NCBI GenBank assembly: GCA_000708835.1
Contig: DF236956.1
Span: 1-64,000 of the forward strand
DNA length: 64,000 nt
Direction: 5' to 3'
DNA from: Klebsormidium nitens
Lineage: Eukaryota > Plantae > Klebsormidiophyceae
This document shows, piece by piece, positions 2,058 to 34,267 of the stretch. Position 1 is the first letter of the stretch, and each line of letters starts with the position of its first letter. The notes beneath the pieces were generated by a model, which searched no databases, was not told the origin of the DNA, and was given only the letters and a program-made list of their open reading frames with translations. Both the position numbers and the translations under genes were made by a program.

Positions 2058-2564
2058 CTATTTCCAATGATCGAAAAGTTTCAGACTCTCGGAATAGTTG
2101 ATTGTTTTTCCTTCACCCCCCCTCGCATTGGAGCGGAATTTCTCAATTTCCTCGGTTGGACGAAAACTTAATGGCATGTCGGGGTTGCGCCGGAGAAATT
2201 GCGTTTCAGTGCGTTGGCGGGAGTATTTCTTCTCTACGCGTTTGCGTTCGCGTTTCTTAGTGACGGTGGCGGGTTCAGGGCTAGGTAGCTTACGATGTAC
2301 CTTTTTGCGCCTTGCGGCTTTTGCTTGAGCTTGATCATGTAGCTTATTTTCGGTTATTTCCATGTCAAATTCAAATTGTTCTTCCTTATCTTGTTTTTCA
2401 ATTTCCCGCGCTCGGTCATCTTTGATGTGAGTTGGCAAAGGGTTTTCGGAGGCAATGTCCTTAGAACTTGCGGGACTTGACCCGCGAGATGAGTATGCAT
2501 TGGAGATTTGATGACGTTGCTTGTATTCTTTCCATAGCTCCTTCTTAACTGTTGCTACTATCTT
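2058..2564 (-). CDS. Basic/charged ORF overlapping the gag 3' end in the +1 frame; not a recognisable pol
   Basis: The frame is open from 2564 to the stop at 2058 (KIVATVKKELWKEYKQRHQ...KLFDHWK*) and overlaps the last 20 nt of gag. No D(S/T)G protease, RT or integrase motif is seen. Confidence 0.5.
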   Translation of the reverse strand, partial: KIVATVKKELWKEYKQRHQISNAYSSRGSSPASSKDIASENPLPTHIKDDRAREIEKQDKEEQFEFDMEITENKLHDQAQAKAARRKKVHRKLPSPEPATVTKKRERKRVEKKYSRQRTETQFLRRNPDMPLSFRPTEEIEKFRSNARGGEGKTINYSESLKLFDHWK

Positions 2565-3972
2565 TTATTCCTCGATTGCTCCTTCGGCTATGTGTTGCGG
2601 CGGAGCTTCGAGTTGTTGGGTTTCGTTGCCGGGTGGCTAATTCCGGATGTAAGTGCACACATTGGGATGAGTCATGAGTGTTGAGCCGATGATATGTGCA
2701 CCATGGCTTGCCGGGAATGCGTTGATTGATGGGTCCATTGGCAACGGGCTTAGTTGGGCATTGAGCGGCTTGGTGCCCAACTTGGCCGCACCGAAAGCAT
2801 GGTCCGGGTTGAAATGAAGTGGGAGTGTTTTGTGCGGTTTTAGCACTCGTTTTATTAGTAGGCACCCTACAAGTATGGGCCGAATGGCCTAATCGTCCAC
2901 AATTTGTACATCTTGAAACCCCTCTTATTTTGGGTCTAGTGTCGCGTTTGGGATGGGTGGTACTAGTAGAACTATTATTATTAATAACCTTAGGATTCAA
3001 CAATCGTTCTTGGTTTATTACTTTCTCAAGCTTCTCAGCTTCAGCTCTTATTAGTTCTACGGTCCATGTACTAATATCCTCGTATTGAAACTGTAATTTA
3101 GTTCTTAACTTGGATTGTATACTCCATGGCAATGCGTTGAGTAGCTTCTCAGCCGCTTGCGTTTGAGGTTGCTTTAAATCTAATGCTAACTTAGACATAC
3201 GCTGACTAGCTGTTGTAATAGACTCATTGTCTTCAACCTTGAAATCTCCATATGCTTGAATCTTCGCCGCCGAGTCCTTTGGGTACGCCTGCAAAAGTCG
3301 AGCCCAAAGTTCAGTGACCGGGTCTCCTAAGAAGTTAGTAACTTTAGGAGGTTCAATTGGCAAGGTTGGCCTAGCATTAGTTCCTCGTTCTTCAACCGTT
3401 TGTGCATCCCAAGCCGTGATAGCTTGTTGCGCAGTTGCTTTGTCTCTGAGATAATTTGATTGCAACGACTCATTGTGTGTGGCTAACTCTTCTTCTTTTT
3501 CGGTTAGCAAAGTGAGATAAGTATCATGAGCTGCCCCACCGGTCTTTGACATAATTACGTGGAATTTGTCGGTGGTTGTTAGCCTATCAAAACCGGCTTG
3601 CAACTTATGAGTGGCTTCCCATGCGGCGTATGTAGACCGCAAATTGTCTAAAGTGACAGAGGATTTAGGTTCTCCCGTGAACTTTTGACTAAACGAATCA
3701 AGTTCCTTAAGCGCCATTGTGAAAGTGGTGGCGGCTTCGGAGTCCGCAGTGTCTAAGCCTTCGGATATGGTTGAGGCTTGAGTGATGGCGGATGTCTCAC
3801 CTCGTGTACTTCTAGGTCTCCGATTGGACCACTGGACAAGGGGTAGCCCTGGCCCGTCGGTCCTGTAAGCAGAACGCTGGGCGTAAGGATTCTGAAGATC
3901 GCTGCGGAGATTGTATCCTGCTTCAGAATCTGAGTTGGACATGGATTCTCTGATTTTTGAAAGGATGTCCAA
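2545..3972 (-). mobile_element. gag: Retrotransposon Gag-like ORF (475 aa) with zinc knuckles
   Basis: Intronless AT-richer ORF with two CX2CX4HX4C knuckles (CTNCGRLGHSAHTC, CFRCGQVGHQAAQC) and a CX2HX4HX4C variant (CTYHRLNTHDSSQC). Confidence 0.85.
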
Positions 3973-4579: not shown

Positions 4580-5345
4580 NNNNNNNNNNNNNNNNNNNNN
4601 NNNNNNNNNNNNNNNNNNNNNNNNNNNNNNNNNNNNNNNNNNNNNNNNNNNNNNNNNNNNNNNNNNNNNNNNNNNNNNNNNNNNNNNNNNNNNNNNNNNN
4701 NNNNNNNNNNNNNNNNNNNNNNNNNNNNNNNNNNNNNNNNNNNNNNNNNNNNNNNNNNNNNNNNNNNNNNNNNNNNNNNNNNNNNNNNNNNNNNNNNNNN
4801 NNNNNNNNNNNNNNNNNNNNNNNNNNNNNNNNNNNNNNNNNNNNNNNNNNNNNNNNNNNNNNNNNNNNNNNNNNNNNNNNNNNNNNNNNNNNNNNNNNNN
4901 NNNNNNNNNNNNNNNNNNNNNNNNNNNNNNNNNNNNNNNNNNNNNNNNNNNNNNNNNNNNNNNNNNNNNNNNNNNNNNNNNNNNNNNNNNNNNNNNNNNN
5001 NNNNNNNNNNNNNNNNNNNNNNNNNNNNNNNNNNNNNNNNNNNNNNNNNNNNNNNNNNNNNNNNNNNNNNNNNNNNNNNNNNNNNNNNNNNNNNNNNNNN
5101 NNNNNNNNNNNNNNNNNNNNNNNNNNNNNNNNNNNNNNNNNNNNNNNNNNNNNNNNNNNNNNNNNNNNNNNNNNNNNNNNNNNNNNNNNNNNNNNNNNNN
5201 NNNNNNNNNNNNNNNNNNNNNNNNNNNNNNNNNNNNNNNNNNNNNNNNNNNNNNNNNNNNNNNNNNNNNNNNNNNNNNNNNNNNNNNNNNNNNNNNNNNN
5301 NNNNNNNNNNNNNNNNNNNNNNNNNNNNNNNNNNNNNNNNNNNNN
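4580..5345. other. Assembly gap (766 N)
   Basis: Run of N. Confidence 1.
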
Positions 5346-6044
5346 CTCACAACCAGCTCGAAGCTGGGTTACGTCCGGCGGGAACGTTCGAAAACGTACC
5401 CGGTTTCAATCGTTGGAACCTTCCGTGCAATAATTGGATTGTGGATAACATTCTGGACCAATGGATGTCCAGCACGATGTGACTGGTCCACAGCCAATGC
5501 GTGTCGAGTCTACGAGGTTACGGTTAGGTGCGCTAACTATGTCGGCTTAAGCTAACTTACTTTACTAAGTACTACACGTCATGCCACGCGTCTCATGCTG
5601 ATTCGTTAGGCGACGCGTTACGCCAGCGACGCGCTACGTTGTGACACGCGATCGATCGGACTCGGAAGCACGCCTGCGATCAGCTCCGGTCCTCGGGGCC
5701 CACAATACTCCAAATCAAACATCATGGACCCTTTCGATTCTTGAAGTGCCCTCGCGAAGTACAAAGGCTTACACATGTGCATACAGTTTGCAGGACGCGA
5801 CTTTACAACAACCTCTTAGAGCAGCTGCCGAGTTAGGTTGGTGCCCGGTTGGTGTATCAGTGATTGCCGTCCCAAAACGTGATATCAATTTCTTGAACAA
5901 CATTCAAGCAATGTTTGCGCATCGGCCGCTGCCTTGCATGCATAGGCACACTCCTCTCTCCACACAATTCACTATGCACAACGACCGTCATTCAACTCGT
6001 GCCCCCGGTTCCATCCTAAACCGTCAACGCCTTCCCTCCCCTCG

Positions 6045-9000
6045 TTACCAAACCGGCGCGTATACCCTGAATTGCCCCCCCGCGTGCAACATTCCGAACA
6101 TGTACAGCAGGCTGTTCGTCAACCGGTTGCTTCCGGTCGCGGGCAGCGCGGAGTTCCACAGCGCCTTGACGAACGCGGTCGCCACGTCATTTGGGGGAAC
6201 CCCGAGCGCGAGCACCGCGTTCATGGCGACCAGGCCGACCCGCTCGTCGGCAACTAGGTTGGGCTGCAGGCTGGTGCCGTCCAGGTCGTAGCTGAGGCCG
6301 TAGTTCTTGACGCCCTCAGCTGTACGAGAGGGTTAAGGAACGGGTCAGTGTCGAGGTAAACGTTGAGGAAAGCGGTGACGAAAGGGAAGAAAGATGTTCC
6401 AGGGACGTGAAGCGCGGACAGCCGTATCGTCGCCTTACGAATGACGATGAAGCTCGATGATCAGCTTAGGACGTAACGGAACGCAAGAGATCTAAGAAAA
6501 GGATGGTCGGAGCGTTAGGTTCTATGAAACGGTGGGTCCGTCCGGAAGATTGGCAACTTGATGGGCTTGCTTCGTTGATTGTTTGGTAAATCCAGATTAA
6601 TGGATCGTTAGGTTTGATGCGAGTGTTGGTCCATCGCCCATCTCACTTATGGGCGAGCTTGAGTGAGACGCCATGTCTCTATGTTGAGGCACCACGTTGG
6701 TATAAGCCCACGAATCGTCTGATGCACGCCGAGAGAACCGCCATGAATTCAAGGACTTGACAGAATCGCAAACGCCTTGACATAAAGACTTCGTCGTACG
6801 GTTCAAGAATGGTTGCCTTATGGCTGACCGCGAGAGCGCATTTGCTACGACAGATCATTTGGATTCAACCAGATGCGTCTGTTTGAAAGAAAGGGTGTTC
6901 GCGCAGCACCCGCCATCTGAAAGCCAAGACGTCACGGAATGACGAAAGACGCAAGCATGACGTCATCGAGGCTCACCGAAGAAGAAGGCGAGCAGCTCCG
7001 AGCAGCGCGTCACCTCCCAGGCGTCCGCTTTCAGCCCGAGCCAGGCCACGTCCAACTGCGCGCGCACAGGATTGATGTCAGCACATATTAAAGCAAACAG
7101 TGTCAGCTTTCCCAGGCGTGGAGCACAAGGCAAGGAATTGACACAGTCCTGTCGGTCGGCAAGGCAACGTCCGTCCGCCTGACTCTGACTTGCGCGCTCA
7201 AATGACGAAATGTTTTCCCAGAGTCGGATGCAACTGAATTTGATCCTCGAACGGGAAGGAAAGGTTCTTCGTCGACCGAGGTGAAGAAGAGGCAAGCATT
7301 ATTCAGCCAGCTTCTGTGGTTCGGCTGCGAGTTCTGCGGTTCTACTCAGGAAAAAAGAAACGGAACGGCATGGAGCAACCTTTACCCGTCTCCAAGAAAA
7401 TTACTCGGAGCATTTTCCTAACAAAGAGAGAGTCGAGCGATAAGACGCTCACGGCTATGTTGGCCCCCGTCTGATAAGCGAGTGGCCCGAACACCGGTTT
7501 GCTGGCGCCCTGTGCCGGCATCGCCGTTCCGTTCAGGTAGCTCAACTCCGGCGGAAGGCCGGAAGCCGTGGAAAACGAGTTCCTGCAATGCAGGACGCCG
7601 TGTTAGGTTCCGCTCGCATCAGGGCCATAGAGTCTCATGTCAGTAGAAATCGCATTCAGGGTAAAAGATGACCGCCTCAAGAAACGACCATCTGCACCGA
7701 CCTGCGAATGTGAGCCGTTGTGAGTCTGGCCTTGGAGTAAGAGTTTAAACCTTCCTCTTTTGGCCAAATGCTCGGGAGTTGATCTGGAGCCGGTGACCCG
7801 CCTAAAAGTCTCCGGTTGCTGTCTAAGCTCACTGCCAGATTGCAGTCTGAGGCCTTAGAGACTGGAATCAATCAGTACTTGGTTTTGCCCAAGGAACGCA
7901 CGAATCACAGCTCTCGCAATCATGGTTCTTTCTCGTCAGTCATGGATTACCCAGACTTCTCGCCTTTGTAAGACATTTCGTCAGCTAAAAGTTTAAATCC
8001 GACATTCTCATACGATTGGTTCGCCTGGTAGGAGAACAGGACTCCGCAGTCCCGATCCTAAGTTTCACTTTTCGGAATGCAGAGTCAGAATTCTAAAGGC
8101 GGGGCGGCTAATTCAAATCCTTTTTGGAAGTCCTCTTCAAGAGCGAGACAATATTTTCTGGCAGGGTTTGTCATGACGTAGCTTCGCCGTTTCCTAGTAT
8201 CTAAATTGCACCGAGAGAATGTCTCAGTGAATGTCAGAGAATGTCAGAGAATGTCAGACGCCGGTTAGACGCACCAACGACAGTCAGAACTCTCACGCTC
8301 TCAGAACACTCCAATTTGCATCGAAGGCCGGAATCTCACTTCAGGAAGTCTCTGCTGCTTTTTGAGACCAACGCCAAGAACCGGTTCTTCCCCCCGCCGA
8401 ACCGTCCGGGCACCCATCGGGACCAGAGGTCGTAAAACACGGGCGTCTGGTAAGCGGTCGCCGTGTACTGGGAACTGCAAGCGGGAATTGCGGGGCTGTG
8501 TGAGTCACTAATCGCGGTTTGGATCTTAAGAAGTATGATTGAGACGAGTCGAGAGTGGAGAATCAAAAGCAAGGAAGCCATGTGCGGAAAAGAACGTTGC
8601 AAGGAGAGTTTCTTGGTCGCTTTCAGTATGAAATTGCCATCTCCACTCCCTTGCCGAGCTCCTTGTACCGTGATCCTTGACACAGAAATGTGCGGAACGT
8701 TCCTAGGCAGAATCCATGTAATCTAAAGCAGTCACGCTTACGTCAAAAGCGCTATTACCTAGCCCAGTAGATTGACCCACATTTAAGTGTTTGCAAATCT
8801 CTTCAGGTTCGGCGACACGCGAAGATTGTGTCTGTTGGGAAGCGCACAGAAGAATAGATTCATAGATAAGACGACGGAAAACGGGGGCGCGTACCCGGCC
8901 GCGGTCGGCTTGTAGGTCACGAGGTTTGGGGTTTGGGACGCGAACATGCTGGTCTCGGGCGTCGCGCTGCCGACGATCCCCGCGATCTGTTCGCGGTACA

Positions 9001-11450
9001 GCATGTTGCTCAGGATATTCTGCGCCCACCGGCGGTAGTCGCCGGACGCGTCCGGACCTGCAGGTTTGAGGATGTGGTTAGTCTTAACCTGATGTTTTTG
9101 CTGTACGTTTGGGGACTTCGTAAGGCTGCTCGCGGAACAGCATGCTGCTCAGAATGTTCTGGGCGCACCGGCGGCAGTCGCCGGACGCGTCCGGACCTGC
9201 AGGGTCAGGAATCAGATTAGGGTGTTAACCCATTATTCAGTGCGTGCCGTCTTCTGGGTTGATTGAAGATGGTTTCGGGCCAATCAGCTGCAGTTGAGAA
9301 GCGAATGGGCCTGCAGGTTACATGCTCGAGAGGGTTAACCGCAACGAACCACGTTTGGTTCGTTAATTGAAGGAGATCAGCCCTGGAGGGTCAAGCAAAC
9401 AGTACCGGTTTGATAGTGGAAAAGTTGGGCTTGGAAATCTGGAACGGAGGCATCCAAGGAGGCATCTGGGCCTACACGGCGAAGGACTCCGGTCGAATCC
9501 AAGCGAGTATCGAGGTTGCTGAAACGACAGGCTTATTTGACCTGTTTTTTTCTATATTGTCACAGATTCCGACCGGATTCTTGTTGCATAGAGAAGGTGA
9601 AATTGCGTTGCGAAATGGGTCACGGCGTTAAACACCGGGAAAGCGCGCAGCGCACCTGTAATCTGCCACCGTCCCGCCGCGAAGAGGAGTGACGTCACGA
9701 AGTACTCTTCCGCCAGCGGAGTCGGAACTCCGTCGACGACCGCCCCGGACTTGGTCATCTGCAGGGAGGCAGAGGAACCGTTCCGCTTGAGGGCCCAGAG
9801 GCGGAACCAGGAGCAATTGAAGGAGCACGAACTAGGAAAAGCTTTGACGATTTTCCGACAATTACGGAACGGAGCTCTCGGCAGCTCCGCCGGAAAGACC
9901 GAAGCAAGTTGTGGTCGGAAGGGACCCTCGCTGCTTACGAAGAAGTGAGCGATACCCTATTCGGAACACCGTTCCGCGGAATGGGCTAGGAAACGGAAAC
10001 CGGAAGCCGGAAAAGGAACTAGTGCCCACCGTGGATGCGAAGAAGCCGGCGTGCTGATTGGGCGGCTGGATCATCATGTTCGCGCGCGTCCAGCCCCACA
10101 GCTGGTCAAACTGCTTCCGCGCGCTGCAAAACGGAACGGAACGGGGCGGAACGCGTCGGTCAACGTTTCGGAAAGCAAGGAGCTGCTTTTTGACCTGAGC
10201 CCGGGCTGTGGCGGCTTTTAAAAACCCTGCAAGGGGCGCTTTCTGAAAAGCTGAGTCGTAAGCGTGATAGAAAGTGGAGAATTAGATTCCTCCTTGCATT
10301 CCAAAACGCAGCCGTGTCCCAACATCGTTTCTCGCGCATGCACGAGCATCTTTCCTTTCGAAATCAAAAGTAGAGAGCAGCACAAGCTGCAAGATTTTCA
10401 GGACGTACGTCCCCCCGATAAACTCCTCGCTGTAGAAGCTGACAGAAGAATGTATTCACACAGAAAGTGTTCCGCCCGGCCCTACCCCATTTGCAGAGCA
10501 AACATCATGCCGTAGCTCATCCCAAGTGACGTCACGTAGCCCGTCACGGGGTCCTGGATGACTGCTGACGTGTCGTCCACCTGGAAGAACAGCCGCGTGG
10601 CGGGGCCGCCCAGAAACGTGGCGTTGTACAGGCCGTCGATCTTGGGCTGCACCAGGGTGGGGTCCTGCGGGGCGGGGGAAGACAACCGGGGTATTTCAGT
10701 ATTAGCTGAAAAACCGCAAGTCTTTTGTCTCTTGTGGCTCATGTGATGTCTCTTCATGTATAGTAAGCTCCTCGCCTAACACTAAAACCGTAACCCTCAA
10801 ATACACCCGCTCCGCACCCGTACCCAAACTAAACCCCCCAAACTAACCCCACACGTCCCAGGGCTGCTTGGCTTACTTTCTCAAAAGCTTATTTTACCTA
10901 AAAATGAAGTCTGCTGATGTGGGTCTCTTGACAAGCGAGAAGAGAGTCATGAAGAAGCAAGCTTTCTGATCAAACCTGACCGGGAAGTCTCCTTCTGAAA
11001 CAACTAAAGACTGGCCAATTGTCGAAGAAGTTTTCGGCGTGTTCTGGAAGTTCCCAGTGGTCGAACACGCGCAGACTGTTCAAAAGCATGTCCAGATCCT
11101 CTGCCCTTTGAGAAATTCGCTTTGTGAAATCTGATCAGACTATTTAAGCCGCTCTATTGGAAACGGTTTCACTGCTTGAAAAGAGTCCGGTTCCCCTTCT
11201 ATACTTACTGGACATTGGCAAGGGCTAAGGTGGGAGCTTAGAGAGCGCAACAATCTGTTGCAGCTCCAACTCACAACTCCCGTCCCCTTCAAATTTAGGT
11301 TCCGTCTTCCTTGTCTATTTACAATCAACGAGCAAAGGCCTTACTTATAGCTGAATACAGAAAGCGGAGAAATGATAGGAGCTCACGATTCCGGCTTCCT
11401 GGAAGAGGTTCCGGTACTGCCCGGTTCCGAAGGCGCCGTAGACGAAGGGC
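6045..11450 (-). other. GH8-like (alpha/alpha)6 domain exons (13-21), Rex/xylanase-like, catalytic residues substituted
   Basis: Collinear GH8 blocks: GAFGTGQYRNLFQEAG, TSLGMSYGMM, FDQLWGW, PTPLAEEYFVTSLLFAAGRW, TAYQTPVFYDLW, SGLPPE, LAYQTGANIALDVAW, GLVAMNA, FVKALWN, LLYMFGMLHAGGQFRVY. Confidence 0.85.
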
Positions 11451-14400
11451 GGCTGCAGAACTTTGCCCATGACGGACATAAAGATCATGCCAAAGATGAC
11501 CGCACCAGTAACCATCATCATTAACGGCATCTTGTAAGCCCTGCAAGAGAAAAATTTCGCACGTTGGAATTAACCGCGCCGTTAACTATCATTATCAAAA
11601 GGCACTTTGTACTCCTGCGAGGGGCGAATCTGACGTTGGATGACTCAAACGGTTTTCTTCCAATAGAATCTGCTTTTGAATAGCCGGCACTTTCCAAGGG
11701 GAGTGAATACCAGAACTATTTTGTCCTCAATAAGTGAGCCGCTTTGAAATTTGTAGGCGACAAGTCAGGTATGTGCGAATGCTGATTCATATGAAACACC
11801 CGGAGACCGATTCCGGACATTTTTCTGGTCTGCTCTTGCCGGCACCTACAAAGAACACCTTGCGCTACGTGAACCGTTGATCCCGCAGCAAGACCCATCG
11901 GACGGCCAGATCGGACCCATATGTAATTTTCTCACCATGTGGGCAGTCGGTTGATCTCCGCGAGCGTGCAGCGCGTTGTGGGCCAAAGATTGACCAGCAC
12001 GAACAATGCGAACGTCAGCGACCCGGCAACGCTGAACCCGCTGCGCTTTGGAGTCGTGATCTGCAGAAGCGAGAAGAGTTTTCAGTCTTTGGGAGCCTAA
12101 TGAACTTAATGTGCTGGGTGTCCGAGTGTGAGGTCGCTTGATATCGGCTGAAAGACACAACTCTGTAACTTCCATAAATGCAACATTTTCTCTTGCGTTG
12201 AGTTTCGACCCATATCAGAGGAGGCACTCTGAGTCAAGGCCCGATGAGAAGGCAGTCCCCTTTGTTATGAAAGACTCTCATCACGAATGACCAAGGAAAA
12301 CGGTCATTGTAGACGGAAGCAGAAACGAACCGGGATCCAATAAGAACGAATCAGACGTTGTTGAAGGCGCACACAGCGACCCCTAACCTGTAAAGGAATC
12401 CATATGGAGTGAACGGAACCGGAATACAACGCATCCTCACCTCGATGAAGAGGTTGGCGCACGCGACGACCCATGTGTGTCTAAATGAAATCCGTTTGGT
12501 GTAAGCCGAACAAGGAAGGACGCATTCACATCTCGTAGAATCGATTAGCGCACGCGACGACCAAGACTTTCCTTTCAGACAAAGCGGAAACGGAAACAGA
12601 AACGGTCTGCGGAAGGGACGCATTCCCACCTCGACGAAGAGGTTGGCGCACTCTAAAACCAACTCTGTCCATGCGAAGCCGAAACGGAAACGGAATGCGG
12701 AAGGGACGCGTTCCCACCCCGATGAAGAGATTGGCGCACGCGACGACCATGAACTTCCGTTCAGACGGAGCGGAAACGGAAATGGAAACGGAAACGGAAA
12801 CGGAATACGAAAGGGACACATTCCCACCTCGATGAAGAGGTTGGCGCACGCGACGACCATGGCGACGAGCAGCATGATGCAGGCAACTAGGTTGGGCAGC
12901 TCCAGCATGGGCCGGATGCCCGTCTTGTGGTCGCCCCACTTCATCCCGCGGCCGCGCACCGCGATGTACGTCGCCTCGATCGTGCCTGCGGGGTTTTGCC
13001 AGGGTTTTAGATTCAAAAGCTAGCTGTTTACGGGGAGTTCACTATGGATCGAAAATCGATCGGAAACGAAAATGCGTGCGAAAGGCTTCGTTTACTAGGA
13101 GCTGTAGTCGCTTCAATCCGGTCGGCTAAGGATTCTGCCTTGCCAATCATTGGTATTGGACGGGAGAACCACTCGGAGCGGAAGTACTCGATGTCCTGTT
13201 CGAGATGCGAGAACGAGACCTTCTGTTGACTCGGTTATTCTTGAGAACTTGCAATCTGTCGCCATTCCTTTTTTGTCCTCAGATAAGCCAAGCTGCGCGC
13301 AGCTGGAGCAAAAAGGTTGGGTGCACTTGTTCCGCATTTTCTTTAGATGCGGGCAGCATCTTTCGAGAACGAGTGAAGTACGAGCAGAAACAGGGGTTTG
13401 GATACAAAGCTCTGGTGTACCGTGACCTTCTGAAAACTGGGGGCCATAGAAAAAGCATATGCGTCGTCTCACCAACGATGGTGGTCCATGCGAAACCGAA
13501 CCAGGCTTGCATGGACCGGTAGATGTCTTTGGCCACCGTCCCGTTCTTGAAGAGGACGTAACACGCGACGCCAAACATGAAGAGGCGCACCGCCTGCAAC
13601 ACGAACAAAGAGACGTCTATGATAACGTTTGAGCATGTCACATTCCTGCATACGTCCGCAGAAGGACGTCTTCTGGCGGCCGCAGAGCAGTCTTTCCTCT
13701 GCGTAACAAAAGTAATCGCACAGCAAGATAGATATAATATGGAGAGGCAGAATCATTCCAAAGATTCAGAAATTCGAGGTAGAACCGAAGAAGGAGGGGT
13801 TCCAACGCAAGCCAGCTGACTCAGCTGTTCTGAGGAAAGTTTCTTGATCTTCATAATCAATCAAAAAGGAGATTGTCACCGAGAATCTGACGCGATCAGT
13901 CGTTTTGCACAGCTGCCTTACCTGGTAGCATGCGAGAGTGATGACCAGGATCGCCCCCGTCGAGAACTTGCCCCCGATCGCAAAGAACTTGAGCGGTGAC
14001 ACGTCACCCACGCAGTAAATGATGGCCATGACGTACATTGCCACCGCCTCGAGGGCCCCAAGCGGGTACAGCGTCTGCGGAGGGATACGGCGTGAGGCTT
14101 GTGGGCGATAAAATCCGTACCCAGATTCGATCGAATTCGGTAGGGACACCCTTGGGGCATTAAGCGCCTAATTGTTTATTGGACACAAGGTGCTGTCCAG
14201 GTGTCGCCGTAGTGATTCTTAAGCGGATTTTGGCTTCTCTTTTTCAAAGACATGAACCCCATATTACTATATTTGGATTGGCCACAGAGCCCATGCGACC
14301 AGCCTATCTGTTTTTCTTTTGGATTATTCAGCTTGTTTGGCACAAGAGCAAACGCATGACAAGCTTTAGCCTCAGAGGGCGCGAGGATCCATTATCATTT

Positions 14401-17400
14401 TCACTGCACAGGTGACATGCACAAGAAATTCTTGCAGTCTTTCTACTTCGGGCGTCATCAAAAGGGTCAAAACCACACTCATAAGCCAAGGTTCCTTTCT
14501 GGGTATGGTTGCAAACGGGCATCGCGTATGCACCATGTCGAAGAAGATGATGGTGTGGAAGATCCGCAGGATCGTGCTCTTCCGCCGCGCGTCGCGGAAA
14601 TGGTGCCCCGTGTCCTCCGGACAGATGGGCTTCGCCGCCTCCTTCGGTGCGTACCGAGCCAACGTCAGCTTCTTGTCGGCCTGTACGGAACAAAGTCCCT
14701 GATTTACTGTGTGGTCAACGCACCAAGCGCGGGCTTCTTTTCAACACCTCGGCATAGAGGTGCTGATTCAGCTTGTATTAGGTGCACAAGAGTCCGCCTC
14801 TGATCGACCTGTTTAAAGGAGGCTCGCTAGCGCCTCGTGATGAGTTTAGGCCAGGAATACCTTGCTAGATTTATTTCGCTGCTTTTATCACCGCTTCATT
14901 CTACAGGACAAGAGAAAAGGAAGAGCCCTGACGCCTTGCGAGAGCATCCTTTGGAAATTTTTGTCAAGGAAAAAGGAAGAGGCCACACGAAGAAGGAAAG
15001 AACGTGAAGGTGAAAGACAGAGGTAGCGCAGTGCCTGATTGTGATGCTTCTGAATCATTTTATCGGACACTTTCTGCTAAAGCGTCTGTCCAGCTGAAAG
15101 TCCTTTAAAATTTCTTAGGGCAGGAAACCCCCAGACTCTAAAGGTGGGAGCGGTAGAAAAACCAAAGCGACTCTCCTTGGACGCCTCACCTGTTGCCGCA
15201 GCGGCGGGTTGAGAAACCGCCGCGAGATGCCGAGCCAGGTGCGTCCATACTCTAGCCAGAACATCTGGACCGACCTGCGGGACAAGGACTGAGAATTGTC
15301 GAGGAGCTGACGCCAAACGAGGGCTGGACTCACATGAGCTTCAGGCCAAGACGAGTTATATCCAAAGCTCACTTCCTTCCTTGTAGTTCCCGCTCTCGTC
15401 TTACTGGACCTGTGTGATCGCCTACGCAGAACTGCGAGAAGCCATAAGTTTGGTCCAATGAGCCTATTCCCCCCTATTCCTTTCAAACGTACTCTCGACT
15501 CAGACTCTTCGAGGAGTTGCTTCTGTTGGTGAACCCCCTCATCCGATGTCACTCTGTTTTCCTGCCGCTTAAACGGAGTCGGTGCAAGCTCCTCCATCCA
15601 GTCCCAAACTATTGAAATTTCCTCGTCTACGGGACAAGCAATATTTGCCAATGCTCCGAAAACTCACTCTTAACCCATTTCTTGACTCACCCGATGACCC
15701 ATCGCTTCCGCTCGTCCATGGTCTCCCCGACCGTCTCGCGCGCGTGCCCCGACGCTAGGTTGATGTTCAGATACGCGCCCTTCCAGCCGAAGCTGTGCAG
15801 CTTGTTGGCCGTCGCCGCGTCCTCCGTCAGGCAGCCGTAGATGAAGCCCAGGCCGTCATCAAGGGCTGGAAATGAGAGTTGGTAATTAGCCAGTGATGTT
15901 GATCCGGATTTCAGCCGAAGCTGTGCAGCTCATTGTCCGTCGCCGCGCCCTCCTCGTTAGGCAGCCATTGATGAAGCCCAAGCCGTCATCAAGGGCTGGA
16001 AATGGGAGTTAGTATTCAGGCGCTGATAGTGATTGATTTTAAGCCGAAGCTGTGCAGCTCATTGTCGGTCGCCGCGTCCTCCTCGTTAGGCAGCCATAGA
16101 TGAAGCCCAGGCCGTCATCAAGGGCTGGAAATGAGAGTTAGTGTTCAGGCGCTGATATTCATCGAATTTTCAGTCGAAGCTGTGCAGTTTGTTGGCCGTG
16201 GGTGCCTCTTCGGTCAGGCAGACGTAGATGAAGCCCAGGCCGTCATCGAGGGCTGAGAATGAAAAGTTGCAATTGAGTTTGATTGAAGTCTACCTTCGTC
16301 CAGAGTTGATATTGATGCGCACGTGGCTGATAAAGTGCACACAGTTTCTGCTTTGTTAACAGGTCAATAAATGGAGCCTGATAGGATCATCTGCAGATCT
16401 CCGTTGAGCAGTAAGTAGTAGGTCGAGCTGAGAACCTTTTAAAATAGAAGGCAGGGACTAAGTTTGTGATCGTTAGTCAGGCTTAAATCTGGGCCGACTG
16501 CTAGATATTTGTAAGTAGGGAAAGACGAGGCTAGTCTGCCCGACCTCAGCCATGCTTATTTGCATCCGCGGTCGATCATTTTCAAGTGGAACATGCAGTC
16601 TGGCAGATGACGTCACGTTTTCCGTGCCTTACCTGGCTTGAAGAAGACCGCGTTCGTTCCGGCGAACGACGCCATACCGATGCCGTCCCTTCCGGCCTGG
16701 ATGCTGGAGAAGAAGACTCCGTTGCTCTGGTACAGCGGATCGTCGGAACCCTGCGACTCCTCGATGTTGCTGAACGTCTGGGGGGTCTGAACGAAGCCGA
16801 CCTGGGGGGGGTGGAAGAGCGGCGTGAGAAACGCTACTCAACTTTCATACTTCGGGGGTTTCAAGGACCCTGATTCAACTCAAATGCATTCACAGAAGGT
16901 AGAAAAGGAATGAGCCGTTTGTCTCCAAGTGGGCTGTGAAGAGTCGTCTCGATTCGCAAAGAAGGGCGCTGCCCTGTTTTGGATGTGCCACGCAGGGGCT
17001 AAGAACCAACGCACAAATACTTCATAAGAGCGAAACTTGGGTCGTATGCACTCCCTTGAGCACTCTTTTCAGCGGCCGACGTCACGCATGACGTCAGCGT
17101 GACGTATCTCACCTTCCAGTCGGGCAGCCATGCCTCCTTTTCGACGTCGTACTGGTAGAAGAGCGGCATGATGCGCTGCAAAAAGTCCGGCTTGGGCTCC
17201 ATGTCGACGTCGAAGAAGGCCAGGAACTGGGCGGACGTGCCTGCGTTCGACGTCGAAGATCCAAATCACGCTTGCTGTCACTTGAGCCAATCCGCTTGGA
17301 GGATGCTGCTACTGCGAATCAGGCGGATGGGCTGTGCAGATTGCCGGCCCAGATAACAATTGCGGCGTCTGCTTCAAGGGGTGCAGATTGTATTCCGCGC

Positions 17401-20400
17401 GAGAAAAAGGTAAATAATATGCCGTGCTTTAAAGTTCACACGAAAGAGACTTTTGGGGTCCCCTTACTTCCATGACCATAATAGGTCAGCTTTTGAGAAG
17501 AAGCAGAAGCAACCACAAAGCGAGCTTTCGGTATGTGCAAGTATAGGACCAGGCAACCTCGGCTTATCCGCATGGAATGAGCGCCCAAACCAACTTTTCA
17601 ACACCAATCTAAAAGCTCGGCTTACCGGCGTTGTAAATGGCGTTCTCCAGATTCCCCGTCTTGAAGTGGCTCTCCTTGCCCTTCATCCGGCTAATGATGC
17701 TCACTTTCGGAAGCCTTTTTTTCGGGTCCACGAAATTCACAATTACCATGCCCCCCGGCGCGGTGTGCCGTCGGGGCACCAAGTGCCCGGGGATCTTTAT
17801 CCGGTTAGGCTTTAACCCTTCCAAAACCTTGATGACCATGGACTCGAGCTCCGCCCCGAGCGTCGAGACGCCGTACGCGCCGTTGGCGCGCTTGCCGAGG
17901 TACCCGTCGTCCAGGATCTGCGGAAACCAGCGTGGTTAAGGAACGGGTTTACGGGTAGCTTTGGTTTCAGCTTCGGATTGGGGAGGGGTTTGCACACACT
18001 TTTTGGTTTGTTTATGCGGTAGGTTTGTGGCCAGTGGGATGTAGCTTGTGAGGTGGGTTAACAGGAAGCTTAGAAGCGAACGAGGTACCCGTCGTCCAGG
18101 ATCTGCGGGAAAACCAGCGTGGTTTAGGACCGGGTTTGTGAGTTGGTTCTTGGTGTGGTGTTTGGGCGGTCTTGAAGGTTCTGCGGTAAGTTTGTGGGCA
18201 GGTTCATGTAGGTTGTGAGGTGGGGATTACGGGCAGGTTAGACGCGAACAAGATACCTGCACGGAACTCGGCGTGGTTAGCCAACGGGTTTAAAGGCAGT
18301 CTTGAGTTGGTAAAGGGGTGAGTCTGTGCCAAGTCGTGCATTGGTTATGAGCTCGGCAGCTTGGATGTTTACGAGGCACTCATCGTCCAGAATACGAAGG
18401 AAGTAAAGGAGTTTTAGGGCTGGCTTAAGGAGTGTGTTTCTGAGCAGTTTGGCAAAAGTGTCAAAAACTTGGGTTGCCTCTGTTAAGGCTTGCCTGCAAA
18501 CCGTATCGGCCACGTCGCGCGTCTCAAGCACAAGTGATATTTTAATCAGAATTCTGGTAAACAGTCGCTTTCAATCGTGAACTAGAACGAGTAGCCTAGC
18601 AAGAAAGAAAAGCATGGGGTCCCCTCCTTCAAGGCCGCTCGTATCGTCCCTACTGGACAAAAACTCACGGCAAGCTCCGTGTGACCTTTAAACCACATTC
18701 ACGAAACGTCCAGACTACAGCCCTTGGCAACGCCAAGGTGTCGATTCTACGGTCCAAGTCGAGAGGCCCTGTTTGAGAAGTCTGCCCACCTTGATGTGCA
18801 GTTTGTGCTTGGGGTAGTCCATCTGCAGGGCCTTCTCGAGCGGGCCCCGCAGCTCTTCCACGGGCTCCAAGTAGTGGCAGAAGCAGATGTCAACCTCGGG
18901 CCAATCGTCCTTCTCAAATGTGGGGTACATCCCTCTGCAAAGAGCGTATACTGTGTAGTTGTAGAAAAGCTCACTGGTTCGTTACAAATATTTTCTCGTT
19001 GAGGAACCCAGAACACATGACGCCTGGGGATGTAGATCAGCCAACATGCCTGAAGCAAGCTAGTGACCGTCTTTGACTTTCTACAGCACCCTTTCCATAA
19101 TTGCAGGAGGCATGATCTCAGAAGCCAGTTCAAGGTGCTGAAGATTCAACTCGTTTGGGAAAAAATATGTTACTTGCAATACAGCCGCACGCGGGAAGGT
19201 TTTGTCGTATCGTATCGTCTATCGAGAAGCGCATGCGAATCAAGAGAGACTCCTGCATTGAAGTTTCATGGCTGAAGAAACTAGAGAGGGTTCGAAGGGC
19301 GCCCCCCACCTGAGCGTGATATCGTTGCGCTCCGTAGCGTACCAGAAGTTGAAGAAGAAGCAGATCCCGAGCAGCCAGCTTACGAGCTCGCTCACAAAGA
19401 ACATGCTGCTCACAATCACGTTCGCGTATGCGAGTGACAGCGTGTAAAAGTACCACGGACCCAGCACTAGAAACACCAGATACGTTGGCCGGAACACGTA
19501 TTTGATGATCGGCCGAATCGTAGCCCTCGATGCAGTGATCGGCTCGTTGGCCGCCAGCCCGAGCCGCGCCCTTATGTCCTCCGCCGTCGGCTTGCGGGAG
19601 ATGTCGAGGAAAGCTTGCGGCCCGCTCTTTGCGGCCTGGTTGCGGATCTTCGCCGGGTTTATGCCAAAGGGTTGCGGGGTTTTGGCGGGGGCTGCCTGCC
19701 GACCAATCAATGGCAGGGGTGTCGTTTCGGCTGAAGAGTTTTGCCCCCCGTTCGGACTGCCCCTTGGTGGGGGGGTAACGTTTCCTGCGAGTTCAGCCCC
19801 CTGGTCCGAACCTGTGCTTTCGTACGCCACCAGGTGCTGTCCGGGCCAGTCCGAAATGAGCAGCCTCTGAGGACCGTTCTCAACGCCGAGCGGAGACTTC
19901 TTTCCGATCTGGGTGCTCGTTTCTTGCCCAGGACTATACTCCAGTTCGGGCACTTCTCTGATTGTCCCCAGTGCTGCGCTCTGCCGAGAACCGGTTAGGG
20001 GCTGAGACTCCGCCGCCGGTTCCTCATCGTCTGGCTCCGTCACATAGCTTATGGACGACGCCGCCGATGCCGGCGTTTCATTGTGCGGCAGCTCCTGAAC
20101 GACGGGCGATCCCTCCAGGTTAGCCTCTAACCCGGCCCCCTCAATCCCGTTTTCTGCTCGCCCATTTTCCTCCGAATCAGCTCCAGCTTTGGCCCCGTAA
20201 AATCCATTCCCGGCATGGCCCGTCGTTTTCGGACCTCCCTCGCGCACGACGGATGTCCGCACGCGCACCGGTCGCAGCTTGGACAGGTCAAAGCCGTCCG
20301 GTTCCTCCTCGTTGCGCGGTGTGAATACGGGCGTGTTTGAGGAAGAGTAAATGTGGTCGTCTTCCGCGGGCGGAGAGCGGAGCACTCGGTTGGTGTCCAA

Positions 20401-20460
20401 GCGCGGGGGCCCGTGGCCCTCGCTCTGCTTCTTGCTGATCAGACTCGAGAGGAAGCCCAT
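6045..20460 (-). CDS. Cellulose-synthase-like GT2 fused to a C-terminal GH8-like domain; 21 exons, 1386 aa
   Basis: Exons (high to low): 20460-19310, 18934-18790, 17917-17626, 17240-17113, 16801-16633, 15865-15691, 15274-15190, 14680-14534, 14074-13922, 13593-13473, 12985-12828, 12060-11936, 11540-11387, 10664-10486, 10123-10030, 9758-9656, 9057-8895, 8474-8340, 7582-7453, 7055-6977, 6319-6045. All introns are GT-AG with matching phases; the sum is 4161 nt (1387 codons, no internal stop). GT2 motifs in order: PEVD..HYLEP, DYP, ILDDG, KTGN, DVD, QTPQ, GTN, TED, ERKRW. About 7 predicted TM helices, then the GH8 domain. Confidence 0.9.
9130..9203 (-). repeat. Intronic copy of the exon-17 acceptor plus the exon 5' end
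   Basis: Near copy of 8991-9063 (…GCCGGACGCGTCCGGACCTGCAGG) with an intact CAG acceptor. Confidence 0.9.
12352..12815 (-). repeat. About five intronic copies of the exon-11 3' end and donor, interleaved with a (GGAAAC)n-like microsatellite
   Basis: Motif CCCACCTCGATGAAGAGGTTGGCGCACGCGACGACC recurs near 12432, 12522, 12620 and 12708, with a degenerate copy near 12352. Confidence 0.85.
14440..14505 (-). pseudogene. nad3: Short mitochondrial nad3-derived insertion (NUMT) in intron 8 of the GT2-GH8 gene
   Basis: 14442-14483 (-) encodes YECGFDPFDDARSR, the conserved plant/algal Nad3 loop. It is AT-rich and flanked by non-nad3 sequence. Confidence 0.75.
15913..16262 (-). repeat. Three tandem pseudo-exon copies (~130-bp period) of the exon-6 acceptor and TED-coding segment
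   Basis: Copies at ~15913-16010, 16042-16140 and 16172-16262 of GCCGAAGCTGTGCAGC…ATGAAGCCCAGGCCGTCATCAAGGGCTG, all with an intact YAG acceptor. Confidence 0.9.
18083..18400 (-). repeat. Intronic copies of the exon-3 acceptor (ILDDG-coding start)
   Basis: GAGGTACCCGTCGTCCAGGATCTGCGG at 17897 and 18083; degenerate copies near 18250 and 18370-18395. Confidence 0.8.
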
Positions 20461-20840
20461 CTTGTTTGAGGCTTTACCAGCTCTTTTGCCAAGGCCCGTA
20501 CATTGCAGAATGTATGAGGAGGTTCTAGCACAGCAGCTCCTTTGCTAGGGAAGGAACACTAGCAAAAGGCCATTGAGTACGGGCAGTGTTTTACCAGCTT
20601 CCTTCCTTTTGTTTTCGGCAGATTCATGCAGAAATGCGGCTATTCCACCAGCTCTCCTTCTTAAGGCACACCCGTCCGAGTAAAACGACCTGCGTTATTC
20701 CCAGGACTTCCGTGCAATTTGTCGCTGCGAAAGTTGGAGCTGAGCTCTCAGTACTCGCGAAGAGCCTGCAAGACTGTAAAGTCACACCGAGTGGCTGGAG
20801 CTACCTCCGCCTGGCCTGGCAGGGTCTGCAGCTGCGGTGC

Positions 20841-21940
20841 TAGATTTGTATGAGGGCCTTTGCGGTGTGCACCTCGGATGTTGCCAGCTCGTCGAGCTCA
20901 GCCTGCGGGAATTCCACTCTCATGAGCTCAATAGGGGATTAGTTCCTCAAGGGATGCGGTAGTCAGGGCCACCTGAAGCAAGGGCATTAGGTAGCCTAAA
21001 ACAGAGCCGCAGAAAGACCTGAATCTTGCAGCGGCGAGGGAATGATTGATATGCTGGCAAATTGCAGAATGTACAGCTACTCTAGCTGCAGTGGCTGGGA
21101 TTTGCGTACCTACTAGGTAGCTGAAAACAGATAGGTATACAATGGGTGCAAGCTGGTGGACGGGGTGCTTTGGGAGCAAGCTCCGACCCGTACACCGGTG
21201 ACATGCAAGCGCCTCACAGGTTCTTTCCAAGGTCCGGTATCCTATTTCAATGTCATTTTCATTGACGGAGCCTTGCATCCTGAAATATTGAATGTGGCGC
21301 GCGCGGAAAAGTTCCAGCTGTTCAGCATCGTCGATGTGGTGGTTGCTATCTTGATCGGACGGACTCAAGAGGTTTAGTAATCTGCGGAGCCTGAGCCTGA
21401 GGGGTGTCGTCACCTCCCGTGTGTCAGATAGAACGTTCACGACCGAGCATGACGTTTGCGCGGGGCGGGAGCTGCGGAGCAACCACTCCCCAGGGTTTCC
21501 AAGGGACTTTTGTCCCGGCCGGCTGGCTGCCGACACCCCCCCGGTTCTGTCGGCTCGGTAGTCGGCAGTTGGCTTTACCGGCCGGCTGAGCCCAGCAATT
21601 GCCTGCCTTTTCTGCCGGCCAACCAGCCGGCGGGGTGCCTTCGGCACCGGCCGGGGTCTAGTCTCGGCCGGCCAGGTCCAGGTTCTCTTGCCGGCTGTGG
21701 GAAACCCTGCCAACTCCCGCCACTGCAAAGCCCTGAAGCCCCGGCTAGCTGCATGATCGGGCACTCCAACTCCACCATCATGGTTGGAAAGTGGAAGCTC
21801 GTCCTTTGAAGTTTATCAGCTGCATTCCTTGGCATTGATGAGCAATATTCGTGTATTTGGGACGCACATTGTCTCTCTGCGTTCCTTGCGCATCCTGATT
21901 CGGCGTCTTGGACAATTCGAAACTCCTGGTCTATCACCTA
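20841..21940 (-). CDS. Possible small spliced gene of unknown function
   Basis: Candidate exons with good splice sites, e.g. ~21381-21208 (…DDAEQLELFRARHIQYFRMQGSVNENDIEIGYRTLERT) and ~20903-20841 (AELDELATSEVHTAKALIQI*). No family recognised and the 5' end is unresolved. Confidence 0.35.
21491..21709. mobile_element. hAT-type MITE, copy 1 (~219 bp)
   Basis: TIRs CAGGGTTTCC…/…TGGGAAACCCTG; homologous over its length to 31702-31919. The flanking 8-mers are an imperfect TSD (CCACTCCC/CCAACTCC). Confidence 0.85.
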
Positions 21941-32053: not shown

Positions 32054-34267
32054 ATGGATTCCTTGAAGAACCTCGCACATAAGGCCAAGGACAAGCTGAC
32101 CCCCGGCTCGCGCAGCAGTGACGAGCAGGGAGACTATGATAAGCAGCAGGGCACGGTGAGTTGCTTCGAACCCTTCATGTCCCATTCGTATCATGCTCTT
32201 TATGTTTGCTCAATGACCATGTCATGCATCCAAGAATCCCCAAATAAGGGGGTTCACTGGTGACAGCGCAACGCAATTGACGAAATCAATCTGTGTGGTG
32301 ATTCCTTTTTCAGACTCCTTTCAAGTTTAATCTCTGTTGGTGGCATTGGGAGCTGTTGATTGGCCTCAAGCGAAGGGCGACTGATATGAACGTCCAGATT
32401 CACAATCTGCCGACTGTCTTGGATCATGATGCATGCAGCACTCAATCTAAGACTTTCTAAGAAGTCACAGCTCCATCTAATTGGACATACGAGAGTCTTT
32501 TCAGCCCTTCGCTATGGAGCAATGCTGAATGCTTGACCTTCAGCATTTGCAACCGCCCCTTGCATTCATTTCGAAGAGCTTTTATTATGCTTGAGGAAGC
32601 CTTGAGGTCCAAGTCCCTCTTTGATGCAACTGAAAGAAGAAGGGTAACTCCTTCAGTTCTTAGTCTGGTCTCTCACTTGAATACGAGGAAGATGGGATTA
32701 ACATTATTGATTCTCTGATTTGCTCTACAATTGTGGGACTGCACAAGTGATCCCCATTGTAAGAGTATGAAGGTGCTGTTTCCTGCTTGATCATTGAAAA
32801 TGTGAAGTCCTGGCAGCCAGCTTTGCCAAAGACTGACAAACATTTTCCAGCAAAGGGAACAACAGATCGATCCTTTTTGCAAGTACTCGCATTTGTGCTC
32901 ACTTAATTTTGAATCACATTGCCTGAATTCAAACGTTCTTGAAAGTTCAGAACATATGTCATGACTTTTCTTCCATCTTTTCTAACTTCCAGCACCCATC
33001 AATGTGAAACTTTGCATGAAACTTTGCGGCAGGACCGTGATGACATCATCTCAAACTCTGTTGCATACAATGCAACAGCTTATTCACCAAAGTGTACTGA
33101 CTTTGAGTTCCTTCACAAGACTGCATCCTGGCATAAGATCCAGGCAACAGAGTGACTGCTTGGGCCTTTACTCCATTGGCTCCTAACTTTTCTTTGACGC
33201 AGCCTCAATAAATTCCACTTGTCTCGCCCACCCAATGAAATCAATGGAGATAACTCTCAAACTTTTGTTTTGCCAATCTCCGGATAAGACCCTATCTTGC
33301 TCTACTTGTGCAGGTTCCAACTGCTTGAACAGTAACCAGAGTCTGAGAGCTAGGTTTTGAGCTCACTAGTCTCTGAGGTCTGAAATACCGAGACATTGCT
33401 TCTATTTCAACTTTGAATTCATGACTCTGTCCTTGATACATTGACATCTAAACCAGTTTTTGTTTGTCGCAGGGCACTGGATATGGCAGCACCAACACTG
33501 GGTACCAGGGCACCCGCACCGACAGCGACACTGGCTATGGCAGCAAGACGACCGGTTATGGCGGTGACGACACCGGCTATGGCAGCAAGACAACCGGCTA
33601 TGCCGGCAGTGACGACACCGGTTATGGCAGCAAGACAACTGGCTATGGCGGCAGTGATGACTCCGCTTATGGCAAAAAGACCACCGGCTATGGCGGTGAC
33701 GACACCACGGCCACCGGTTATGGCGGCAGGACTACCGGCTCTGGTGGCGACGACACGACCGGTTATGGCGGCAGGACCACAGGTTATGGTGCTGACACCG
33801 ACGTTGGAGTCGGTGGCCGAGGCAGGAACGTCGACATCGACTCTGACATCGGCATCCCGTCAAAGTACGCAGGGTCCGACTCCGTGACTGGCGGCGACGA
33901 CACCGGCAGCGGCTATGGCACCAGGAAGACCGGCTATGGGGGCGACGACAACACCGACACCGGCTATGGCAGCAAGAAGACCGGTTATGGCGGCAGTGAC
34001 GACACCGGCTATGGCAGCAAGGGCTCTGGATACGGGGGCGATGACAACACTGGCACTGGTTATGGCGGCAGGACCACCGCTTATGGTGCTGACACTGAGA
34101 CCGGCCGTAGCGGCCGCGGCAATGCTGACGTCGATTCTGACATTGGCATCCCCGAGAAGTATGGAGGGTCTGACACTGTTCCTGGGGCCCAGTATGGTGG
34201 CAGTGGAGGCAGGCGGGGAGCGGGGGGATATGGTCGTGATGACGACACCACCGGTGATGACTATTGA
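32054..34267 (+). CDS. Gly/Thr/Asp-rich hydrophilin, dehydrin/LEA-like; 2 exons, 298 aa
   Basis: Exons 32054-32155 and 33473-34267 (phase 0). N-terminal LAHKAKDKLTPG resembles the dehydrin K-segment core; many TGYG(S/G)(K/R/D) repeats; no Cys or Trp. Confidence 0.75.

Follow-up and report, generated by a model that had tools for sequence, protein, structure and literature searches.

The DNA analysed here, called the window throughout, is the stretch of 64,000 nucleotides formed by positions 1 to 64,000 of contig DF236956.1 of the streptophyte alga Klebsormidium nitens (assembly GCA_000708835.1), and its minus strand carries a gene (6045..20460) that joins a glycosyltransferase family 2 (GT2) synthase to a domain of glycoside hydrolase family 8 (GH8). 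Translation from stop to stop initially gave a series of coding segments that bore motifs reminiscent of GT2 and GH8. The corrected model assembles them, from an ATG at 20460 to a stop codon at 6045-6047, into 21 exons, separated by 20 introns whose donors are GT and whose acceptors are CAG; the coding sequence of 4161 nt specifies 1386 amino acids and has no internal stop. The whole coding region is supported by the joints of RNA contigs, by its open frame and by an orthologue with the identical 20 intron positions. The locus is one expressed nuclear green-algal gene for a membrane protein of 1386 residues.

The exons lie at 20460-19310, 18934-18790, 17917-17626, 17240-17113, 16801-16633, 15865-15691 and 15274-15190 (exons 1 to 7), at 14680-14534, 14074-13922, 13593-13473, 12985-12828, 12060-11936, 11540-11387 and 10664-10486 (exons 8 to 14), and at 10123-10030, 9758-9656, 9057-8895, 8474-8340, 7582-7453, 7055-6977 and 6319-6045 (exons 15 to 21). 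RNA contigs from public runs of the same organism, in which exon 1 is present, were aligned to positions 9001-15000 and 15001-20950, and they confirm introns 1 to 16 exactly, each joint reading CT..AC on the plus strand and GT..AG on the coding strand. In plus-strand coordinates these are 18935-19309, 17918-18789, 17241-17625, 16802-17112, 15866-16632, 15275-15690, 14681-15189 and 14075-14533 (introns 1 to 8) and 13594-13921, 12986-13472, 12061-12827, 11541-11935, 10665-11386, 10124-10485, 9759-10029 and 9058-9655 (introns 9 to 16). Introns 17 to 20 (8475-8894, 7583-8339, 7056-7452 and 6320-6976) were placed by comparison with the orthologue, on the basis of canonical sites conserved there, of a GH8 profile score that was 310 bits before the correction of exons 17 and 18 and 338 bits after it, and of the length of the RNA contigs.

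Single RNA contigs pass through the locus in runs X1 (5060 nt), X3 (5199 nt) and X4 (5196 nt), crossing in all three the joints that lead from the transmembrane (TM) region into the GH8 domain, and shorter ones were obtained from X2, X5 and X7. Junctions 11936/11540 and 11387/10664 are present in contigs of X1, X2, X5 and X7, and the shorter contigs of X5 and X7, which come from two other studies, span the latter together with adjacent joints. The nine middle exons form a single open frame from the membrane region into GTGQYRNLFQEAG...TSLGMSYGMMFALQMG, and the codon of Trp950 is divided by intron 12 into TG in exon 12 and G in exon 13 (bases 11937, 11936 and 11540). Exon 13 (11387..11540, minus strand) is the fusion exon: its first base completes Trp950, and it encodes both an extra helix, TM7 (residues 954-975, 11465-11530), and, as GTGQYRNLFQEAG, the first residues of the GH8 fold; it is 89% identical in the orthologue. 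An earlier note, made from the letters of the window, had read 21 GT-AG exons, one 1386-residue open reading frame (ORF) and a split Trp codon between exons 12 and 13; the first two figures are those of the corrected model, the split codon is borne out by the RNA junction, and the three joints that it had singled out for a check by RNA reads (12060/12828, 11936/11540 and 11387/10664) all fall within single RNA contigs. A dynamic-programming search based on splice sites and codon usage reproduced the RNA-supported junctions in the middle of the gene. Its donor of exon 4 and its placement of exons 17 and 18 were overruled by the RNA joints and the orthologue, and the micro-exons that it called at 18102-18082, 10429-10409 and 9196-9169 are not used by the RNA. 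Upstream, the contigs are unspliced from 19310 to 20950 and continue for about 290 nt, which gives a 5' leader (20461..21243, minus strand) of at least about 780 nt with six short upstream ATG frames (4-40 codons) and an in-frame stop at 20545-20547; no nucleotide conservation was found between this leader and the 475 nt upstream of the orthologue.

Exon-intron boundaries have been duplicated repeatedly in this gene, and these duplicates explain the micro-exon calls of the gene finder. Intron 5 holds a tandem array of 129-nt units (window 15784-16262; 3.7 copies, 84% matches) that repeats the acceptor and approximately the first 80 nt of exon 6, with splicing only at the 3'-most copy, and intron 11 holds three diverged 77-nt copies (window 12398-12861) in which 34 nt from the end of exon 11 and the donor site are followed by 43 nt of intron, with splicing only at the 5'-most donor. 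Intronic copies of exon starts with their acceptor are also found at 9189-9220 (exon 17) and 18082-18102 (exon 3), and the orthologous contig L001 has intronic copies of the starts of exons 17 and 21 at its positions 5948-6085 and 9767-9829. A (CGGAAA)n repeat at 12771-12805 shows very high depth in run X7.

When the last exon was used as query against 1.84 billion protein representatives, one close match was returned, an 88-residue fragment (P0001) with 82% identity, whose source is a 39.7-kb metagenome contig of the Joint Genome Institute, found also in a second sample, that bears the whole orthologous gene (L001/L002). When the exons were mapped one by one onto L002, 19 of the 21 had matching boundaries with canonical CAG acceptors and GT donors; the true ends of exons 17 and 18 also came to light in this way, and both species have canonical sites there. 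The orthologue accordingly has 1395 codons in 21 exons, all of them bounded by CAG and GT, and all 20 introns at matching positions; nucleotide identity is 84% in exons and 46% in introns. The architecture, a GT2 domain followed by membrane helices and GH8, is thus conserved in a second species. At synonymous divergences (dS) of about 0.8-1, the ratio of nonsynonymous to synonymous substitution rates (dN/dS) is 0.04 in the GT2 domain, 0.05 in the TM region, 0.13 in the GH8 domain (dS 0.76) and 0.34 in the N-terminal region.

That N-terminal region of approximately 310 residues (19531..20460, minus strand) has no recognisable domain and evolves fast, being 52% identical to its counterpart in the orthologue; neither a Pfam domain nor a Cys-rich motif was found in exon 1. 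It is followed by TM1 and TM2 (residues 325-372, 19345..19488, minus strand), which were placed by hydropathy and by a phmmer alignment with the E. coli BcsA helix that precedes the GT domain. The GT2 catalytic domain (residues 385-700, exons 2 to 7, 15235..18933, minus strand) is recognised by matches to TIGR03030, to the Rhodobacter BcsA structure 4HG6 and to E. coli BcsA (reference sequence from NC_000913.3). Single exons match Pfam Cellulose_synt and Glycos_transf_2 weakly, the former below its cut-off, and exons 2, 5 and 6 give collinear matches to the NCBIfam model TIGR03030 (CelA, UDP-forming cellulose synthase), although these total about 72 bits against a cut-off of 699, short of what defines a bacterial BcsA equivalog. 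Exon 6 alone matches 4HG6 (E-value 3e-6) better than it does plant CesA structures, with TED and the Arg-Trp of QxxRW aligned; the same exon returned generic GT2 clusters only from the ESM Atlas. With the spliced protein as query, phmmer aligns residues 336-438 with BcsA 215-315 and residues 513-703 with BcsA 335-516 (58 + 19 bits), an alignment that includes WPxVDI, ILDDG, HxKxGN, DxD, QTPxxF, FxG(S/T)xAV, TED, RW and the IF2 helix.

On the minus strand the motifs are found at 17903-17911 (DDG), 17651-17668 (HFKTGN), 17203-17211 (DVD), 16772-16789 (QTPQTF), 15819-15827 (TED) and 15699-15713 (ERKRW, at the QxxRW position). ILDDG (residues 433-437) equals ILDDG of BcsA, FDVDM (539-543) corresponds to FDCDH, and LTEDA (641-645) to ITEDA in 4HG6 and VTEDA in E. 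coli BcsA, while ERKRW (680-684) keeps the Arg and Trp in both species with Glu in place of Gln. A 74-residue insert after DDG is the sole insertion. Neither PilZ, whose place after the last BcsA-like helix is taken by TM7 and the GH8 domain, nor the hallmarks of plant CesA (an N-terminal RING zinc finger, the plant-conserved region and the class-specific region) were found. As judged from these motifs and alignments, the GT2 domain is a member of the BcsA/CesA superfamily, equipped with the motifs for processive beta-glycan synthesis (DDG, DxD, TED, RW), and we take it to be active because it evolves very slowly.

The membrane channel region (11974..14572, minus strand) was delimited by hydropathy, by its alignment with E. 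coli BcsA 493-700 and by its low dN/dS. It comprises TM3 (residues 752-786), TM4 (794-830), an IF3 helix (841-865, with WxxIxxTxxAxYIA as in BcsA), TM5 (880-907) and TM6 (917-937), and the amphipathic segment at 852-865, WTTIVGTIEATYIA, matches E. coli BcsA IF3 (BcsA 589-602), WSEIYETVLAWYIA. At the position of the gating loop RGRGMKWGDHK stands against GKFNVTAKGG of BcsA, so that FxVTxK is absent and the loop is degenerate. By sequence, five hydrophobic segments and the IF3-like helix follow the GT domain, as expected of channel helices, and the count of two helices before and five after the catalytic domain that had been proposed earlier fits both the hydropathy and the IF3 match. Three of the hydrophobic segments come after IF3, with peaks of 2.76, 1.71 and 2.21, against two in BcsA. 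Solved structures place IF3 at the cytosolic side, and BcsA has its C-terminus, two helices later, in the cytosol; with three helices after IF3, the C-terminal domain of the algal protein should therefore be outside or luminal. Lys and Arg cluster, on inspection by eye, in the loops assigned to the cytosol, and N-glycosylation sequons, considered as a further clue to topology, are too few to be meaningful. Hydropathy and the analogy with BcsA thus indicate that the GH8-like domain, which begins only about 10 residues beyond the last helix and shares exon 13 with it, probably lies on the outer or luminal face.

The remainder of the protein is a complete GH8-fold domain (residues 985-1384, exons 13 to 21, 6054..11437, minus strand) that carries eight introns, and it was recognised by hmmsearch and by PDB matches. 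A profile built from 32 bacterial GH8 relatives, of which 18 were scanned against Pfam and all 18 match PF01270, finds residues 974-1384 of the spliced protein with 338.5 bits. PF01270 itself gave no match to single exons. Single exons nevertheless match Rex8A, TtGH8, xylanase Y and a cellulase (E-values 2e-6 to 5e-5), and the last exon by itself aligns with the C-terminal ends of GH8 structures, namely those of the cellulase (22gt), Rex8A, xylanase Y and TtGH8 (E-values 2e-6 to 2e-5). The profile of the 18 relatives retrieves TtGH8 with an E-value of 6e-154 and BcsZ-type structures, as weak matches, with 6e-16 to about 1e-15, and E. coli BcsZ compared directly with the algal protein by phmmer scores 10.5 bits. 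Because the clade-profile and BcsZ scores differ so strongly, the C-terminal 400 residues are assigned on sequence grounds to the xylanase/Rex8 clade of the full GH8 (alpha/alpha)6 fold and not to the BcsZ clade. The analogy with BcsA plus BcsZ is therefore no more than a loose one.

The domain retains the fold and has lost the catalytic carboxylates. Aligned with Rex8A and TtGH8 on the minus strand, the catalytic acid Glu (Rex8A E70, TtGH8 E73, helix alpha2) is Leu1048 (10524-10526) in TSLGMSYG, the third conserved Asp (Rex D128, TtGH8 D133) is Leu1107 (9714-9716) in PTPLAEEYF, against PAPDGEEYF, and the catalytic base, an Asp at the end of helix alpha8 (TtGH8 D281, YDAWR), is Leu1260 (7480-7482) in FGPLAYQT, against FxYDAWR. 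All three Leu residues are present in the orthologue as well. In TtGH8, Glu73 and Asp281 act as acid and base, and the D281N replacement costs about 10^4-fold in activity (PMC6173055). On this evidence the GH8 half is no longer a hydrolase. Of 50 columns conserved at 90% or more among the 18 bacterial relatives the alga retains 34; the other 16 cluster in the cleft, where a Trp has become Ser, an Arg Gln and a YY pair LT, and where the RYYDG motif is altered. Since the triad is all Leu and dN/dS is nonetheless 0.13 at a dS of 0.76, the GH8 domain is, by the signature of its sequence, a maintained pseudo-enzyme.

All the relatives found for the GH8 domain are bacterial, and the fusion may be of bacterial origin, as the earlier note supposed. 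In a tree of 78 bacterial and two algal domains the algal pair falls outside all the others, on a very long branch of its own (2.3 + 0.45 changes per site); its nearest rows by path are Chloroflexota, without support, and no donor can be named. A genome scan with a single GH8 exon gave no match, and one with the aligned domain led to 80 bacterial loci. None of these 80 closest bacterial GH8 genes (0/80) has a GT2/BcsA-like gene within 2.5 kb; an ancestral GT2-GH8 operon was accordingly discarded as a candidate, and nothing points to the transfer of a ready-made operon. Among the 150 best matches of the representative search none has a GT2/TM-like region, the long ones being bacterial multidomain GH8 enzymes. 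The full-length protein is absent from the library of 1.84 billion representatives and from the 90%-cluster search, which returned only P0001, and a degenerate exon-junction pattern run against metagenome contigs in search of a spliced transcript hit 8 unrelated loci. Since the full-length sequence is found in neither of the public collections that were searched, annotation may have missed the locus or given it a wrong gene model. The full-text literature searched gave no report that links GH8 to a synthase fusion in algae, so the surmise that a GT2-GH8 fusion had gone undescribed agrees with what was found both there and among the representatives.

The reading that we favour, and consider rather probable, is that of a processive beta-glycan synthase in which, by means of an additional seventh helix, a GH8 cleft that no longer cuts is held at the exit of the channel to handle the chain. 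The synthase would push its product through a channel formed by its own helices, as BcsA and CesA do; beyond the helices that match TM7 and TM8 of BcsA, one more helix would cross the membrane again, so that the GH8-like domain comes to lie next to the exit of the channel, on the outside (or in the lumen). In this position the non-cutting domain could bind or steer the nascent chain, or else a polymer of the wall, and so serve in hand-off, assembly or anchoring. A beta-linked glycan would be the product, and ERKRW together with the degenerate gating loop would permit something besides ordinary cellulose.

Several points weigh against this proposal, which is drawn from sequence. The topology comes from hydropathy and analogy, and TM3 and TM4, each counted as one helix, are long (35 and 37 residues). 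The exchange of Gln for Glu in QxxRW and the unconserved FxVTxK loop make synthase activity itself a prediction, and binding of the GH8-like domain to the enzyme's own product would be a supposition; with 16 of 50 conserved columns changed, glycan binding may have been altered or lost. Finally, introns 17 to 20 were placed by comparison.

It is also conceivable, though in our judgement unlikely, that the GH8-like domain faces outward but plays no part with respect to the polymer that the enzyme itself makes. Its fold would then merely lend stability to a wall anchor, a sensor or a protein-protein scaffold by which synthase units are grouped. Remodelling is heavy in the middle of the cleft (the exchanges of W, R and YY noted above, and three carboxylates replaced by Leu) and the branch of the algal pair in the GH8 tree is very long, which together suggest a new function over retained substrate binding. 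However, the conserved columns that remain include the aromatic residues Y1052, W1070 and W1123, the domain evolves under constraint (dN/dS 0.13), and its start shortly after the last helix makes it adjoin the channel exit. Improbable is a cytosolic GH8-like domain, which would require an even number of helices after the GT domain and would act as a regulatory or substrate-side module in the place of PilZ. Such an arrangement would resemble BcsA, where the domain after TM8 is cytosolic, the length of TM3 and TM4 allows other counts, and a conserved NGT sequon at 832 falls in a loop assigned to the cytosol; nevertheless, IF3 aligns with an IF3 that is on the cytosolic face of BcsA, three strongly hydrophobic segments follow it, and R942, R949 and K953 lie in the loop that precedes the last helix. 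Plant CesA, moreover, has five helices after the GT domain in solved structures.

We hold it to be very improbable that the GH8 domain is still catalytic, as a hydrolase or transglycosylase that trims or remodels the nascent chain like BcsZ or KORRIGAN by means of other residues, e.g., the Glu-Glu of LAEEY. The fold is complete and under selection, E1109 and E1110 are near the cleft, and the position of the base varies among GH8 subfamilies (PMC6173055), but the acid Glu that is invariant across GH8 is Leu, as are both Asp, active bacterial enzymes have the Glu-Glu pair too, without its being the catalytic one, and in TtGH8 the single D281N replacement already exacts its heavy cost. That the fusion is an artefact of read-through between neighbouring genes or of chimeric assembly is scarcely credible: the contigs are assemblies, not single molecules, and carry a long 5' leader, but the junction codon is itself split by an intron, neither a stop nor a start lies between the parts, identical joints occur in runs of three studies, and the 21-exon frame is conserved in a second species at a dS of about 0.9.

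Elsewhere in the window, a 475-codon ORF with two CCHC zinc knuckles (2545-3972, minus strand) resembles a retrotransposon gag, and similar repeated ORFs lie at 317-1727. A low-complexity ORF on the plus strand at 33464-34267 would encode a Gly/Tyr/Asp-rich repeat protein (TGYGGDD units), and one of 899 codons on the minus strand at 44386-47085 is Gly/Phe-rich, with repeated DFGFTxGxGKKVGFS units. Runs of N, masked or gap, at about 4580-5340 and 58170-58900 account for the low-GC bins of the composition profile.

Little is understood of the way in which new polysaccharide chains are received, ordered or released once outside the membrane. The cellulose synthases of bacteria, plants and tunicates pair with a partner of GH fold (BcsZ, KORRIGAN and a GH6 domain, respectively), and the real job of that partner is debated. 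If the reading of a non-cutting cleft at the channel exit is true, the algal protein would be a second, independent case of a eukaryotic synthase with such a partner welded to it, in which hydrolysis was abandoned and selection kept; a fused partner that no longer hydrolyses and is still selected would argue that the non-catalytic, chain-handling role of the fold matters. The gene is expressed and short enough for heterologous expression, and its host group, the streptophyte algae, is used to study the origins of land-plant walls. More speculatively, and unlikely as a whole, the gene could define a new eukaryotic class of wall-polymer synthases, with a small family of these fusions in Klebsormidium-like algae near the origin of land plants, in which a BcsA-like GT2 with ExxRW and without FxVTxK makes a non-cellulosic beta-glycan (e.g., xylan-like or mixed-linkage) and a built-in pseudo-xylanase serves as a dedicated chaperone that takes up and orders the chain at the channel exit.

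Bacterial-origin GH8 in a green-algal nuclear genome is known from lichen-forming Trebouxiophyceae, which have a stand-alone, secreted and active GH8b lichenase (PMC11126685). Kinship with that enzyme was ruled out, since the domain described here is of the xylanase/Rex8 type, fused and predicted to be inactive. BcsA-like GT2 synthases are likewise known from streptophyte algae, in which CslP, CslN, CslO and CslQ group with bacterial BcsA/CesA and not with land-plant CesA, and for which horizontal transfer has been proposed (PMC9915684); GH8 is mentioned zero times in that report. The closest solved relatives of the GH8 domain are TtGH8 (6G00), Rex8A (6SHY), Bacillus halodurans xylanase Y (1WU4) and a Pseudoalteromonas haloplanktis enzyme (1H12), all collinear with it over the whole fold. 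GH8 xylanases and reducing-end exo-oligoxylanases share many core and cleft residues with the algal domain, but they are soluble, secreted and active inverting enzymes with Glu/Asp/Asp, whereas the alga has Leu/Leu/Leu in a domain tethered to a synthase.

The BcsA pathway offers both a GT2 that aligns over all core motifs and IF2/IF3 and a GH8-fold protein that acts outside the membrane. The algal synthase differs from BcsA in having no PilZ, ERKRW for QxxRW, a degenerate FxVTxK and two helices instead of four before the GT domain, and BcsZ differs from the algal GH8 domain in being a separate protein of another GH8 clade, whereas the latter is fused and, by its sequence, inactive. The nearest parallel in architecture comes from tunicates, whose CesA joins a GT2 to a C-terminal GH6 domain. 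That domain has no catalytic Asp and is believed to have gained a new, non-hydrolytic role, and the parts of the protein are believed to be bacterial (PMC7464555). Both are eukaryotic, intron-rich, single-chain GT2 proteins with a fused C-terminal GH-fold domain that lacks catalysis. They differ in the family of that domain, GH6 in tunicates and GH8 (alpha/alpha)6 in the alga, in the host lineage, which makes the algal case an independent event, and in the extent of the loss, the catalytic Asp in tunicates and three catalytic positions, all Leu, in the alga; the tunicate product is established as cellulose, while that of the alga would be a beta-linked glycan. By this comparison the resemblance is one of analogy or convergence and not of homology, and the K. 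nitens gene is an independent fusion of a synthase with a dead hydrolase fold, drawn from a different GH family than in tunicates.

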